Assembly (NCBI GenBank): GCA_023515725.1
Contig: JALDTO010000179.1
Span: forward strand, 454,053 to 518,052
Direction: 5' to 3'
DNA: 64,000 bases
DNA from: Amoeboaphelidium protococcarum X5
Taxonomy: Eukaryota; Fungi; Aphelidiomycota
Shown: piece by piece, positions 18,777-46,444 of the stretch
Position numbering within the stretch: the stretch's first letter is position 1
How the letters are laid out: each line of letters starts with the position of its first letter
Position numbers and translations under genes: made by a program
The notes under the pieces: model-generated
Seen by the model: only the letters and a program-made list of their open reading frames with translations
Database searches by the model: none
Told to the model about the DNA's origin: nothing

Positions 18777-19253
18777 GTTTTAAAGTGGGATATAGTCGAA
18801 AAATTACAAGCAACTTCCAAAATATTTTACAATTTGAAATATAATGATGGAAAATAGATGGCTTCAAGTTTAAATCGAAAATGGAGACTCTGCCGATTTA
18901 TATTATTGTTTGCTCATCACCGTAGTCAAATTGCAAAGCATGACTATATCATGAAACAGTCGATACTGAACGAGTAGATCATGCCTTATATTCTAAAACT
19001 ATAAGTCAAAACGCGATTATCCAGCATTTGAATATTATCTGTAGCTCCTGTACCAGATAATATGCAATGCTATTTTGTCTATCAACTCGCAGTTGATATT
19101 AATTGCGGAAATGGTCAAGCGACTGGTCTCTCACTATTTCCTTCTCATAAAATCAGCGATAGACAACCGCGACGGCCAGTCATCATCATTGAGTACTGTA
19201 GTTGTTATTGTTATTATTATTGATTCCTTTTTCATACGTGGTTGTTTAATTAA

Positions 19254-22200
19254 ATGAATTCTAGTAATTATAGTAGCACAGGCTCTAAAAAGTCACATTA
19301 AGGTGCAAGTCATAGAAATTATAATCATCATGGGCATCTTCATTAAGGACAGAAGCCTGGATTCATTGCCGAAATCTCAAAGTCGTCATCTGCTGCTGTG
19401 AATAAGAAATAGAATTACCAAGACCTTCTCAGTTCTATATCTGATTTTACCTCTGAGATTGTCCGCAATAGTATAGTTGATGATAATTAGCTTGGCGATA
19501 ATCAGCTTTAGCACAATGATAAGGATGGACTTGAGTAGCGGATATTGGCGGAGAAGTAATTGTAGCTCTTCTCTGACGGTGGCAGTTAGTAATAATAATA
19601 ATAGTCTACTTTGGATGTGAGACACGCGTTTAAATAAAATGATATCAGTCCGGAGTATAATGTTACTGATGTTGATGTGATATCTGAGCTGATTTAGAAC
19701 AAAATAGAGGAAGGTCATGGGGAATGTGTTCTTGAGTTGGGATCTTCGCAGCATGGTATCATTTTGAATACAGCAGAGCAATTGGAACATTTGATTAAAG
19801 TATACCAATAGGCAGCACAGAAGCTCAGTCTTGTGGCTACGGTGGTTTACAATAAGTAGGAGAATGACCGGTATAGTGCATATCTCTTAATAAGGCACCA
19901 GGTGGACAGTGCTCATGCTGATGCTTCGCATTTGATTGAATTAAGAGTAGCATGTGTGGGTAATGTTGATAGTGGAAAATGCTTTGCTTATGATACCAAA
20001 TTACTCTCGGCTGATTTGAAGCCTATCGCTGTTCAAGATATTAAAGTCGGCGATAATCTTTTTGGTCCTGATGGTAGTATTCGAACAGTCTTGCCAGGAT
20101 CTCTTACCCGTGGAAGTGGTATGCTTTATAGAATTGTACCGTAAGCGCCAAAATTTTCTCCTTTTGTGGTCACTGGTAATCATATTCTGGTATTATAGTT
20201 GCAGGGAGATTCATTATCGTTACGATTTAAGATTACGGTCGTGGAATTTATATCGCTTCCTCATGAACTAAGGTCCAAGCTCCAGCTTATTAAGGCTAAT
20301 TTGAGTTCCTAGTTAGTTGATTATAGAAGCTATAGGGGTTTAGAGAATTGGGTAAGGAACTCTGCCTGTCGGAATGATGTTTTGAAGTGCTTTTAATAAT
20401 GGTTGGCTGGTATGTTCTACTGCTTCTGGTAGAGTAAAAGTCTGTAATTTTTATCCACAGACTGCGCTATTAAGATTAACTTCATAAGGATACTATTGGA
20501 AATATTTTAAAGGGATATTATGCATTAATCTTTAATATAGCTGTCTGACTTGGAGGCTGGAAGTATATTCGATCGTGTAATGAAGATTTGCGCTGAAGAA
20601 GAAAGTCAGCATTTGAGGAATACCTAAATTCTGTATTGGCTAAGAGGTTTACACACCGCATATCTTATTCTTGAAAGGCGGGTATAGTTATAGTAAGCTC
20701 TCTACGGTTAATCATTGTCTGATTTTTGTATTGAGCTGATCGCTGCTCTCGAATCAATAGATCTTTAACATGTGGATAGCGCAATTTATAATCAAAGCGG
20801 CGAGAGTAGGGATTTATATCTCTGTGACTAAAGTTCATTTACAATAGAAGAATTCGGCGAAGGTGCGTATTACGGATTTGAAGTTGATGGCGATCATATG
20901 ATATTGCTTAGCGATTGTACAATTACTCACAATTCTACAACTCTAGGTGTACTGACATCAAGTGACTTGGATGATGGAAGAGGCGCCGCTAGAGTTAAGC
21001 TGTTTAAACACAAGCATGAGATAGATACTGGTAGAACGTCGTCAGTTGGTCTCGAGATAATGGGATTCGATTCTACCGGGAGGCAAGTAGTCAAATAAGC
21101 GGATAACTTTGGTAGAAAGCTCAGTTGGGAAGAGATCAGCCGGCGGGCAGCTAAGATGATATCGTTCATTGACTTGGCCGGACACGAGAGATACCTGAAG
21201 ACCACCGTATTCGGTATGACTGGCTGTATGCCTGATTATGTTATGCTCATGATTGGATCTAATGCTGGTATTATAGGCATGACCAAGGAGCACCTAGGAT
21301 TGGCTCTGGCTTTAAATGTCCCAGTGTTCGTTGTCATCACCAAGATTGATATGTGTCCTGCCAATATTCTGGAATCCACCATCAAGTAGCTGACAAAGAT
21401 TCTCAAGAGCAGCGGGTGTCGAAAGATTCCCATCTTTATCAATTCAATGAGTGATGTCATATCAACTACCAAGACGTTCGTGTCTGAGCGCGTATGTCCT
21501 ATATTTCAGATTAGCAATGTCAGTGGTGTTGGCGTTGATTTGCTTAGGAGTTTTATCAATCTTCTCCCAGTGTACAAGTAATTTGATCCAAAGAAGTCTG
21601 TTCATATCCAGATCACAGAGTCATTCAGCGTCCCAGGTGTTGGCTGCGTTGTATCTGGTGTTCTATTGAATGGTACCGTGCGTGTTGGTGATTCCCTCCA
21701 GCTTGGTCCTGATAGCAATGGACATTTTATACCGGCGCAAATTAAATCTATTCACATTAAGCGGCTCAACGTACCATATGCGAGTGCTGGTTAGACTGCA
21801 TGCTTTGCCCTTAAGAAGATCAAGCGTAGCTACTTGCGAAAAGGCATGGTGTTATTAGGAAGAGATGTGAAGCCTGAGGCTGTGCAGGTATTCGAGGCTG
21901 AAGTTCTGGTACTGTATCACAGTTCAACTATCGGCAAGTGTTACTAGACTATGGTTCATGTGGGAAATGTGCGGTAAGCGGCGTACGTACTATCTATAAC
22001 GCCATAAAAATAGATACTTGAGAGTGGTAGTGGTGGTGGCGAACTAGCAAAATCTGGCTCTGCTGATAACTTGGCTAATTAATCTTAATCTGTTGGTGTT
22101 GATACTTCTTAAAGCCTGGCTGAGAGAAATGTTATCAGAACAGGTGACAGGGCTCTTGTTAAGTTTCGCTTCATGAAGTATCCAGAATATATACAAGTTG

Positions 22201-22268
22201 GCTAGCGTTTGCTATTCAGAGAAGGTAGAACTAAAGGAGTTGGTAAAATAACTAGATTATTGGCGTGA
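19254..22268 (+). CDS. GTPBP1: GTPBP1-like translational GTPase precursor, 1004 aa including a 318-aa intein (686 aa after splicing)
   Basis: [11 protein letters not shown]; [13 protein letters not shown]|[36 protein letters not shown]; [20 protein letters not shown]; TKID; [13 protein letters not shown]. Confidence 0.95.
19980..20933 (+). mobile_element. Intein, 318 aa, with a degenerate LAGLIDADG-like centre, inserted in the GTPBP1 Walker A motif (GK|S)
   Basis: In frame with no TGA. Block [33 protein letters not shown]; block [12 protein letters not shown] (TxxH); block [17 protein letters not shown]; block G ITHN followed by Ser+1. Confidence 0.95.
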
Positions 22269-22406
22269 TTGTGCTCTCACCAAGCTTATGTACATGTATC
22301 ATTGCACTCAGGACTTCATAAAACTATTCAAATAAAAAATGAAATTGCTGTATGAATGAGTTTACTACTATCAGATTATATTTATCATGCGTTAAAAGCA
22401 TCGAGA

Positions 22407-23042
22407 TCACTTGTGCTTCAACTTCTTGATGTAGAATTCCAACTCCTTACCTTCAAGAATGTAGCCATCACAACGACCAGTCTAACCAGGACGGCTAGAG
22501 ATACATGCAAGCAATCTACCGGCGACAAATTGATCATCGATAGCAGCCTCAACGTGAGCATCATCCTTACGCGACTCAATCTTGCGCTTGACGTGGCTCG
22601 ACTGCTTCTTCTAATCTGCACCGTCCTGCTTTGACTCCTCAGCAGCAGCAGCAGCGGCCTGTGCTCTCTTCTTCTTACCCAAAACCTCACCATAATGAGC
22701 CTCCCACCACTGACGGAATGGAGCGGCATCAATCTGCACGATGGCATTCTTCACCAAAGTCTTGGTACGCACCAACTCGTTATTGGAAGCGTTATAAACA
22801 ACATCGATAATACGCGTCTTACGAGTAATTGCCTCTGATCCCCAAGAGAAGTTTCCAGTCTCCAGACGCAGTGCACGGTGCTTGGTATTTCCACCCATGG
22901 TACGGACAGTGTGCACTTTACGAGCACCCAGCTTGGTCATTGCCGGCTGACGTCCCAATTCAAACTTACGCTTCTTGCGGTATGCGGCGCGCTTAGCACC
23001 AGTTGCGGATCGCTTGTGGCGACTATCTCTAGAAATTCCCAT
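22407..23042 (-). CDS. RPS8: 40S ribosomal protein S8 (eS8), 211 aa
   Basis: [18 protein letters not shown] ... SRPG(TAG=Q)[17 protein letters not shown]; TGA at 22407. Confidence 0.97.
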
Positions 23043-43666: not shown

Positions 43667-46444
43667 ATGTCTAACGCCGCTCCTACTGATTTCTGCTCTA
43701 TCTGCTCTAAGTCTTACACTAATTTGAGTAAGCACAACAGTGCCTCTCACACTCCTTCTGTGGCTGTCTTGGTTAATGGTCTAACACAGACCATTGATAG
43801 ACAGCCTGACGGTAAGTTTCATTGTCCTAATTCTAATTGTTCGGTTACTATCATAGATGTATCCAAAATCAAGAGACACGTCGTGAGATGTGCAATTGAT
43901 TAGTCAATTTAGTCTACCCTGCAATAATCTGATTAGGCGATTGCTCCATAACCTCAACCATTGCCTTCCACCACACAGGCTTTGAATTTTGATCTACCTC
44001 ATCTGTCTGGCGTGTACTTCAACCCCAAGCTGGGTTGTTTCATCTGCCTCCACCATGGCTATGCTGTCCGGCGCACTGCTATTGTCACTCACATGAAAGT
44101 AAATCATGGCTTCTCCGTCACTTTGGAAGCTCTGTTGGCCCACTTCCAGATTGACTCCTCTGCCTTCATCGAAGAGTATGGTTTTGGCCCTGCTGACACA
44201 CCTCACGATGCATATCTTGGCCTGAAGATTGAAAAGAAGTCTTTTTGCAGCAACTGCACTATCCTTGTCTGCCATGACACTGCACGTAAGGATCATGGCT
44301 CCCACTCAGTTACGTAGGTTGACGCGTAAACAGTATATCAAGGTGTGCAGAGCGTGTCCTACTTCCGTGTAGTGATCCCTGATGCATCAACAGCTATTAA
44401 TGCAGCAGATGCTGCCATCAACTAATTCCTTGGTAGTTTGCTTGAACCAGCTATTGGTCCTCCTCCTGATAATCCTGCTACCGGCGGCAATACTGACGAT
44501 ACTCATTTTCAAGCATTTGAGTCCAAAATGTCTTTTGCACATTATGTGCAAAGACGCGCTGACTATCTTACTGAGATCAAATCAGCAATGGAGCTGTAGG
44601 CTGTTGATAGGTCCACCCATTTGGAATTGCTCTTTAGATACCTTATGCAGTGTATGTCCTCTGTTCCTGCTATGTCTTATCCGTTGCGCCAAGCAGTGAT
44701 GGGTGCTGATCATGCAAATGCCCTGAAACCGCTAGAAAGCGGTGCTACCCTGAAGAGGTACGCTGATCAATTTCTTGATTTTGCTTATTATATGATGGCT
44801 GATGAGATGTCCTCTGGTAGTGTTCCTCCCGAATTCGATGTTGCACTAATCAAGAGAGTTGTCCTCAAGGTAATCAGTTAGAAAATTGATCATATTCGCT
44901 CAAGCCGTGATGAGAGCTACTGCTACCGCTTCCTGGGACAGCTCTATCATGGTGGACAGTGCAGAGTACAGTCCTTCCGTCACAGGGTGGCCTTTCTGCT
45001 TTACTGCCTTCGTCTGGTGACCGCATATGTGGTATATACTGACACAAGTGATGCAAGCCATTCGGCGCTGCTAGACTGCTTCTCCTCTGCTTCTGGGAAT
45101 GTCAACGAGCTCCTCACTTCTCAAAAGATAATGGTTGGCCTGGAGTCTTAGGTGTAGAAGGTGGCGAGCATCTACCTTCATCCTACTCTACCCGACACGT
45201 ACATTGTCGAGGGTCAGTAGTTCTCTCTGCCCAAGTTCCAAGGCGCTGTACAAATGGTCCTTGAACAATGCAAGGAGCTGTCCTCTCTCCTCTGTCTCCC
45301 TCCTATCTCTATCCACACATTGGGCTATGACAATGTTCAGAATGTTGAAACTGGATATGGTTTGCTGCCTTGCTACCTGGTGGCAAATAAGAGCGTTGTT
45401 GTTGACTCGTTGAAGGCCTTTTTGATTAAGCATAATATCTTGCAGCTGGATCGTGATAATATCTGTCTGCGTTATCGCGAATACTCAGAGCCATTGTTGG
45501 AGTAGTTGATGTGGCTCATACACATTCTGACTGGTTAGCCTCCACGAGCATCTGAGGCTGTTGAGCTGCTCCTTGAGAATACCTCCTCTCTCCAGCGCAG
45601 CGTAATGGTGGTGATGGATACGCTTGCCTTCCTCCCTCCTTACAACAAGACGGATTCAATTACTGGTCAGCACAAGGTAATTGTCCGATTCTCATGCCAG
45701 CTGCTTGATGCTGTCCTTCTGCCCTATCTGTTAGTAGCTAGAAATATAGAGAAGATGCTCACACGTGACGAGTAGCTGTCTGTCTCTCTTGGTACGTACG
45801 TGTGTGCTGGTCCTACGGGTCGGTGGTCTGCTGACTAATATCGCACCACGATCAAAAAGGTGTTTGCAAAGTCAATGTTTGGAATGGATATGGGTGTAAA
45901 AGTCTATCGTCATTTATCTGCTACTTTGGTCAGGTAGTCTCTGCTTACTGTTACTGGCGACTGCTATTTGCCACCTTACGATCAGTAACGTGGTCATACT
46001 ACCAAATTGGCTGAGGACCATTATGGCCTACTAAATGTGGATGTATAGTCTGTCGGTAATAGTGTCCTACAAGCATTTTACGTAGCCTCTCGCCGTTGGT
46101 AAGTGTTGCTTGGTGTGGCCTCTTAGAGTAAATTGTTTCAACACACCATATTGAGTGATACACCTGCTAGCTCTGCATTGTTGGATGGACGCGCCCCGCC
46201 TGCTTCTACTACTTCTCTGACTCCCTAATAACAACTGGCTACTCAATCTGTCAATAACATTTGCATTCTTAATCTCCGTAACAGTGACCAGGTGCAAATT
46301 GAGTCTAGTCTCCAAGATCTAGATGCAAGGATGTCACTGCAGTTGAAGGAGAAACTGAAGTCATGCGGCATGGTGGATTGGATTTGCAGAGATGAAATGC
46401 AAAGTCTAATAAACACACTTTTTTGTGTTGCTGGTAACGAATGA
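43667..46444 (+). mobile_element. Zinc-finger/DUF3505-like plus tyrosine-recombinase-like protein of the telomere-linked helicase N-terminal type, 925 aa
   Basis: CSIC..H/CPNSNC..H fingers; FICLHHGYAV..IVTHMKVNH; TGQPPRASE, YNKT, VYRH, DQQRGHT, DHYG, ASRRWQ. Confidence 0.7.

Follow-up and report, generated by a model that had tools for sequence, protein, structure and literature searches.

A predicted class-1 intein in the Walker A motif of the nuclear GTPBP1 gene of the aphelid Amoeboaphelidium protococcarum

The inteins of the nuclear eIF5B (IF2) genes of Batrachochytrium and Rhizophagus interrupt a translational GTPase of early-diverging fungi; their C-extein begins at the Walker A threonine and, read by eye, the Batrachochytrium members carry a two-residue insertion after block A (PMC5784728). 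The TerL1-a intein lies between the invariant lysine and the nucleophilic threonine of Walker A (PMC5050341), and a study of Anaeramoeba counts 15 KOG host families for nuclear inteins outside that genus (PMC10710043). Here we describe an insert in the GTP-binding protein 1 (GTPBP1) gene of Amoeboaphelidium protococcarum, an algal parasite among the fungus-related aphelids that reads TAA and TAG as glutamine (PMC5304391). It resembles the eIF5B inteins in its nuclear location, its early-diverging fungal host, its translational GTPase host gene and its Hint family. We consider it very probable that this insert is a working, cis-splicing class-1 intein that has become a stranded selfish element.

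Our analysis covered a stretch of 64,000 nucleotides (the window), to which all positions refer unless another contig is named. Read with table 6, in which TAA and TAG encode Gln and TGA is the stop, an intronless forward-strand gene (19254..22268; database protein P0274) specifies a 1004-aa precursor ending at TGA. Its 242-aa N-extein (19254..19979, forward strand) ends within the first part of Walker A, the G1 motif GNVDSGK (19959..19979, forward strand), whose lysine is residue -1. Between this lysine and the serine that completes the motif, GNVDSGK being parted from STTLG, lies an in-frame insert of 954 bp or 318 codons (19980-20933, forward strand), after which the gene resumes with a 444-aa C-extein (20934..22265, forward strand) containing the remaining G domain, with DLAG (G3) and TKID (G4), and EF-Tu-like domains II and III. 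The insert begins with Cys1, has TGNH at residues 65-68 (20172-20183, forward strand) and YYGFEVDG at residues 297-304 (20868-20891), ends in His317-Asn318 and is directly followed by Ser+1 (TCT, 20934-20936, forward strand), the predicted splicing nucleophile and, from P-loop and intein chemistry, also the Mg2+-binding serine of GxxxxGKS. The initial annotation had listed the insert, its site and these residues, and each proved exact on the sequence. The position is the classic Lys-Thr/Ser site of P-loop inteins (PMC5050341).

There is next to no chance that the insert is an intron or an assembly artefact. It begins with TG and ends with AT rather than following the GT-AG rule, its frame is open (it holds not one TGA, whereas the remaining two forward frames have 7 and 14), it has a Hint fold, and two assemblies and independent samples carry it; an intron was ruled out by the insert ends, the open frame and mapped contigs. 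The latter came from four public runs, and speak to presence only, as rare forms drop out. In run X5, coverage starts at 19248, one contig (19248-20329) spans the first junction and two cover 20767-20981 with the second, while no contig of this run has a joint that skips the insert. Run X5 is unlabelled and probably RNA, judging by that coverage start and by a depth of ~3480 at the S8e end compared with ~20 over GTPBP1; from its contigs, it seems likely that the insert is kept in the mRNA. From the RNA-labelled run X13 a single 151-nt piece, at depth 2, matched within the insert exactly. The insert is likewise present in a biofilm metagenome and in a second sample labelled as the same organism, and no empty allele was seen among the contigs of the mapped runs. 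The X5 contig of ~3480 depth, at 22221-22400, overlaps the last GTPBP1 codons and probably represents the 3'-terminal part of the transcript from the convergent S8e gene. A dual RNA-seq study of A. protococcarum was published in 2021 (PMC8657485).

Two stretches, which cover both ends of the insert, match Pfam Hom_end_hint (PF05203) at E 1e-15 and 58.7 bits, above the cut-off of 32.1, placing the insert in the VMA1/Prp8-type family, and its nearest solved sequences are Prp8 inteins and PI-SceI. This match, obtained on the table-6 translation, combines with the canonical residues and the native host gene described below to bear out the class-1 intein in Walker A of a nuclear GTPBP1 that had been proposed from the letters alone. 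AlphaFold, supplied with an alignment of inteins from the same site, returned a confident Hint domain at residues 1-105 and 281-318 (mean pLDDT 86-98 per 10-residue block in the N-terminal half) and a low-confidence, helical middle; a single-sequence model of the intein (pLDDT 34) was discarded. With the retained model, Foldseek placed Cryptococcus Prp8 inteins on top (E 1.5e-10 and 4e-10, TM by target 0.91-0.92). The N-terminal Hint half (residues 1-105; 19980..20294, forward strand) comprises Cys1, block A, a two-residue insertion after block A, and block B, and the C-terminal half (20829..20933, forward strand) comprises blocks F and G. Cys1, His68, Gly299, His317 and Asn318 are invariant across the same-site alignment A1, which was too loose for contig scanning. 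By every feature that can be tested on the sequence the insert is thus a class-1 intein, and it is predicted to splice.

The host gene is a native GTPBP1. Compared with solved structures, the C-extein finds GTP-binding protein 1 (9ypg) at E 1.6e-152, the next best match being 6.6e-18; PF00009 and PF03144 are recognized and domain III aligns to 9ypg. Trees were built from the C-extein or the intein alone. In a tree of 129 C-exteins, with no animal GTPBP2 among them, the aphelid protein belongs to a fungal clade with a support of 97, in which every other member lacks the intein; it groups with named fungal GTP-binding protein 1 and the genome's paralogue lies outside. The comparison of occupied and empty orthologues suggested at the outset gave a clear result, in that none of the 118 other proteins compared, mostly named fungal GTPBP1s, has a Hint domain. 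The GTPBP2-like paralogue pair of this genome (L006, L007; G000:C264, C214), with altered GTPase motifs (GNTNCGKS, DTCG), has no intein, and both eIF5B copies are likewise empty. Taken together, these comparisons show that the gene is native and the insert a later arrival. Insertion of a whole viral gene was ruled out by the extein tree, the TAR codons and synteny with the ribosomal protein S8e gene in three assemblies or copies; this convergent neighbor (22410..23042, reverse strand) is placed alike beside the second gene copy and in another strain. TAA or TAG accounts for 17 of the 22 Gln codons of the insert, which argues for long residence in the Amoeboaphelidium code and makes the element untranslatable in a standard-code recipient.

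The second genome copy, on contig C135, corresponds to GenBank KAI3639798.1 of A. protococcarum, and the GenBank proteins for GTPBP1 are named hypothetical, with the intein unmarked. Each gene that we looked up (GTPBP1, its paralogue, RPC1, RPC2 and eIF5B) was paired, which fits a hybrid genome, as we take that of A. protococcarum to be. A chance origin of the open frame is excluded, as the same insert is found, with its frame open, in the second copy (L003) and in the other strain (L280). Comparison of these three alleles (window, C135 and L280) gave dN/dS values of 0.08-0.09 for the exteins, 0.17-0.23 for the Hint halves and 0.45-0.67 for the middle; between the window and the second copy alone, the values were 0.19 for the N-terminal Hint half, 0.11 for the C-terminal Hint half and 0.06 for the C-extein. 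At synonymous sites the two copies differ to a similar extent in the Hint (distance 0.40) and the exteins (0.32), and the intein is therefore older than the split of the copies and has not been recopied since. Because the insert sits in both copies while strong purifying selection acts on the exteins, functional GTPBP1 most likely comes from splicing. A dead or cleavage-only insert, with GTPBP1 function lost or supplied by a paralogue, could appeal to the empty GTPBP2-like pair, but is very unlikely, because purifying selection strongly preserves the exteins and the Hint residues across three alleles and no catalytic residue is missing.

The 178-aa middle (20295..20828, forward strand) occupies the endonuclease position and may descend from an endonuclease. 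Within it, neither Pfam nor the atlas gave a LAGLIDADG or Hom_end match, a profile of the middles of endonuclease-bearing same-site inteins scored -1.5 to -2.1 bits, within the range of shuffles, and hhalign assigned a probability of 0.2% to the LAGLIDADG domain. An active endonuclease was rejected on these four lines, and by sequence the element would not be classed as a homing intein. As the middle is weakly constrained in addition to having no endonuclease signal, the element is probably immobile. The middle is the fastest-changing part of the gene, with 57% and 73% identity where the C-extein reaches 97-99%, and its frame is kept. However, comparison of the two copies shows some departure from neutrality (pN<pS, p 0.0015), and the region is predicted to be helical; it may therefore have a residual role.

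If the stranded-intein model is correct, GTPBP1 would be transcribed and, probably, translated with its insert, as the RNA-like contigs suggest, and the two Hint halves would fold about the middle. By analogy with the family, an N-S shift at Cys1, aided by His68, would generate a thioester at Lys-1, Ser+1 would take over the N-extein and Asn318 would cyclize with the aid of His317, whereupon an O-N shift would remake the Lys-Ser bond of GNVDSGKS and release an active 686-aa GTPBP1. In terms of history, lateral homing into the native gene would have preceded divergence of the subgenomes, with the endonuclease lost afterwards. The data show directly how the insert is built, that its fold matches a Hint domain, how selection acts along the gene, that the host gene is native and that occupancy is patchy; splicing, lateral entry and loss rather than primary absence of the endonuclease are what we infer. 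The intein would persist because only exact removal leaves the P-loop intact.

The Walker A lysine and serine bind phosphate and Mg2+, and with the two held apart the precursor should be inactive. The earlier statement that the GTPase is inactive until spliced is consequently sound, in the sense that a precursor that does not bind GTP-Mg follows from P-loop chemistry. The regulatory switch that had been built upon it found no support: an interrupted active site is true of every P-loop intein and commonly explains why such inteins are kept, and an inactive precursor is therefore no evidence of regulation. A domesticated switch, in which splicing depends on redox, metal, temperature or life stage and so controls GTPBP1 activity, perhaps by way of the helical middle, is unlikely. 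It would accord with the fixation of the insert in both copies and all mapped samples, with a middle that keeps ~180 residues in frame under mild constraint and contains several Cys, and with the conditional splicing recorded for other inteins (PMC10710043). Fixation, however, is expected of any P-loop intein, the middle changes fastest, its Cys positions are only partly shared, and other fungi use GTPBP1 without an insert. An extended version, which joins an unreported host gene shared by viruses and nuclei to a domesticated aphelid intein, with a sensor-like helical middle in place of the endonuclease and splicing that gates the ribosome-associated GTPase during the zoospore-to-parasite cycle, is more improbable still.

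The insert belongs to a widely distributed set. When 1.84 billion representatives were searched with the second junction, 28 more clusters of GTPBP1-like proteins proved to have an intein at precisely this position. Contig scans brought the total to 43 occupied rows, including three from aphelids and one duplicate, with inteins of 136-470 aa. Besides the aphelid, some 40 GTPBP1-like proteins thus carry an intein there, most of them giant-virus-like and a few eukaryote-like, and the occupied site therefore represents a widespread mobile allele rather than an aphelid invention. In the viral collection, 11 of 67 scoreable loci are occupied, and the three same-site contigs that we checked carry giant-virus gene sets (D5 primase, TFIIB, RPB10, MutS, YqaJ, eIF2-alpha). 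Several same-site inteins retain LAGLIDADG or Hom_end domains, some with intact motifs. Over the tree of 129 C-exteins, occupancy switches at least 18 times. Prokaryotic, mostly archaeal, homologues were empty at 77 of 80 loci and none was seen occupied, and the search matches included no other aphelid. Other routes added little: a word-index search with the first junction piece and a single-protein scan of viral contigs gave no match, and a word search with the whole intein, using a tool too insensitive for the task, found only the aphelid copies and one phage-like protein.

Among the individual loci, the uncultured eukaryote-like GTPBP proteins P0152, P0004, P0008 and P0014 have the same-site intein. 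The contig of P0152 (L028:10001-12655) looks eukaryotic, measuring 314 kb and encoding a tubulin-tyrosine ligase and kinases; in the extein tree, P0008 and P0014 are placed beside the fungal clade. On a giant-virus-like contig, the same-site intein of P0002 (L026:8001-10970) has an AP2 domain inside its LAGLIDADG region. L294, from a record titled as a Bryobacterales MAG, is a broken-up, eukaryote-like, empty GTPBP1 and probably reflects eukaryotic contamination of a bacterial bin.

Two origins of the insert deserve weighing; both are compatible with a stranded intein and concern the donor only, which intein trees of 135-138 columns did not separate. Allelic homing from a GTPBP1-like gene of a giant virus, or from another protist through a viral carrier, has a little less than an even chance of being correct. 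The 11 occupied viral loci just described agree with this source, as do the same-site proteins on giant-virus-like contigs, several with LAGLIDADG/Hom_end. A single clade of all GTPBP1-site inteins was not rejected, the tree so constrained gaining 40.7 log units over a quick free tree (p-AU 0.905), as allelic homing by way of viruses would lead one to expect. Furthermore, the genome also has inteins in RPC1 and RPC2, and RNA polymerase subunits are listed as hosts shared with viruses (PMC10710043). Conversely, the aphelid intein is a long branch with no well-supported sister, and its Hint identity to same-site inteins is at most 40%, compared with 43% to other-site viral inteins (picked for likeness). 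P0068, the single starred partner, likewise forms a long branch; its pairing with the aphelid intein was rejected as two long branches joined, and disappeared in a larger tree.

Alternatively, and more tentatively, the intein may have reached GTPBP1 by a non-allelic P-loop jump from one translational GTPase to a related one, starting from an eIF5B intein in an early-diverging fungus or from the same nuclear lineage of inteins. Batrachochytrium eIF5B inteins occupy the matching P-loop site (PMC5784728), and the target motifs are alike (GHVDTGK before T in eIF5B, GNVDSGK before S in GTPBP1). The two-residue insertion after block A is shared with the Batrachochytrium eIF5B inteins, by eye, in PMC5784728 supplement 2, and occurs in none of 88 scoreable viral and other inteins. 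P-loop hopping, including a jump between the SRP receptor and eIF5B of Rhizophagus, is on record (PMC10710043). Of the 58 nearest other-site viral inteins (picked for likeness), 51 sit at a Walker A Lys-Thr/Ser junction, which indicates that the family favors P-loops. By eye, 28 of the first 54 ungapped residues match the Batrachochytrium eIF5B inteins, but this is not above the best viral match (29/54), and the aphelid's own eIF5B copies are empty. Moreover, the two-residue insertion is present (by eye) in Trichosporon Prp8-a and missing from Rhizophagus eIF5B, and so may have arisen repeatedly and is only suggestive. As we figure it, the viral, allelic donor falls just short of an even chance, an eIF5B-type nuclear intein is a clearly smaller though substantial possibility, and the remainder lies elsewhere.

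Further inteins and related sequences were observed in the same genome and searches. Both copies of RPC1, the largest subunit of RNA polymerase III, contain an intein of ~420 aa that starts with Ser and ends with Phe-Asp before Thr (G000:C212 ~565300-566360 and C264 ~836790-837820; L024, L025). Both copies of RPC2 contain one of ~440 aa, which follows GEMERD, starts with C and ends in HN before C (G000:C192 ~529100-530413 and C221 ~44080-45370; L020, L022). Together with GTPBP1, this makes at least three intein hosts in the genome. The RPC2 reading frame on C221 (L023:2856-8744, reverse strand, G000:C221) has an internal, near-exact repeat of ~330 aa that may be an assembly error, and a further match to the Hint N-terminus at G000:C192:533774-533974, ~4.6 kb past the start of the RPC2 intein, is possibly a partial duplicate. 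In P0107, a P-loop protein like a viral packaging ATPase, a single Walker A motif holds two inteins spaced by three residues.

GTPBP1 is apparently an unreported intein host common to giant viruses and nuclei. It is not listed among nuclear and viral hosts in the available part of the 2018 eukaryotic intein survey (PMC5784728, Tables 1, S8, S10), nor is it mentioned in the main text of the Anaeramoeba paper, whose 18 novel hosts are in a separate dataset (PMC10710043). Searches of openly accessible full texts for inteins in GTPBP1, or in GTP-binding proteins of giant viruses, returned nothing relevant, and no paper was found that describes inteins at this site in GTPBP1-like genes, whether from giant viruses or from uncultured eukaryotes. 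The initial annotation did not count GTPBP1 among the known hosts, and the literature searched yielded no earlier report. Although the splicing mechanism itself would be ordinary, GTPBP1 becomes the second translational GTPase to host an intein, after eIF5B, and adds one to the few nuclear intein hosts shared with giant viruses. Viruses and eukaryotes together provide ~40 occupied and >100 empty GTPBP1 alleles, of which some keep intact endonuclease motifs. This set makes testable the debated idea that viral endonucleases cleave the nuclear GTPBP1 site where it is empty, and likewise its eIF5B look-alike. For annotators, this is an intein hidden within "hypothetical" GenBank proteins.

Several groups of inteins can be set beside the aphelid one. 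Compared with the eIF5B inteins, it has another host gene and Ser rather than Thr at +1, and those inteins are listed with a LAGLIDADG endonuclease (PMC5784728). The classic P-loop inteins TerL1-a, DnaB-b, MCM-a and RFC-S-a (PMC5050341, PMC4760082) and those of Anaeramoeba, for which P-loop hopping is described (PMC10710043), share the P-loop insertion. However, their hosts are ATPases of prokaryotes, phages or Anaeramoeba, and Anaeramoeba cluster 1 is class 3 where the aphelid intein is class 1. The best PDB matches, Prp8-a of Cryptococcus (6mx6/6mwy) and VMA1 PI-SceI, have in common with it Cys1, the block-B His, a Gly-type block F and the terminal His-Asn, and differ in host and site; the Cryptococcus element is a mini-intein and PI-SceI an active endonuclease, whereas the aphelid intein has a 178-aa middle with no endonuclease signal. 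The same-site inteins of giant viruses and uncultured eukaryotes share its insertion point, the pattern of Cys to His-Asn before Ser, and its Pfam family. Yet their mean Hint identity to it is 34%, many keep LAGLIDADG traces and one an AP2 domain, and their host genes branch apart from fungal GTPBP1.
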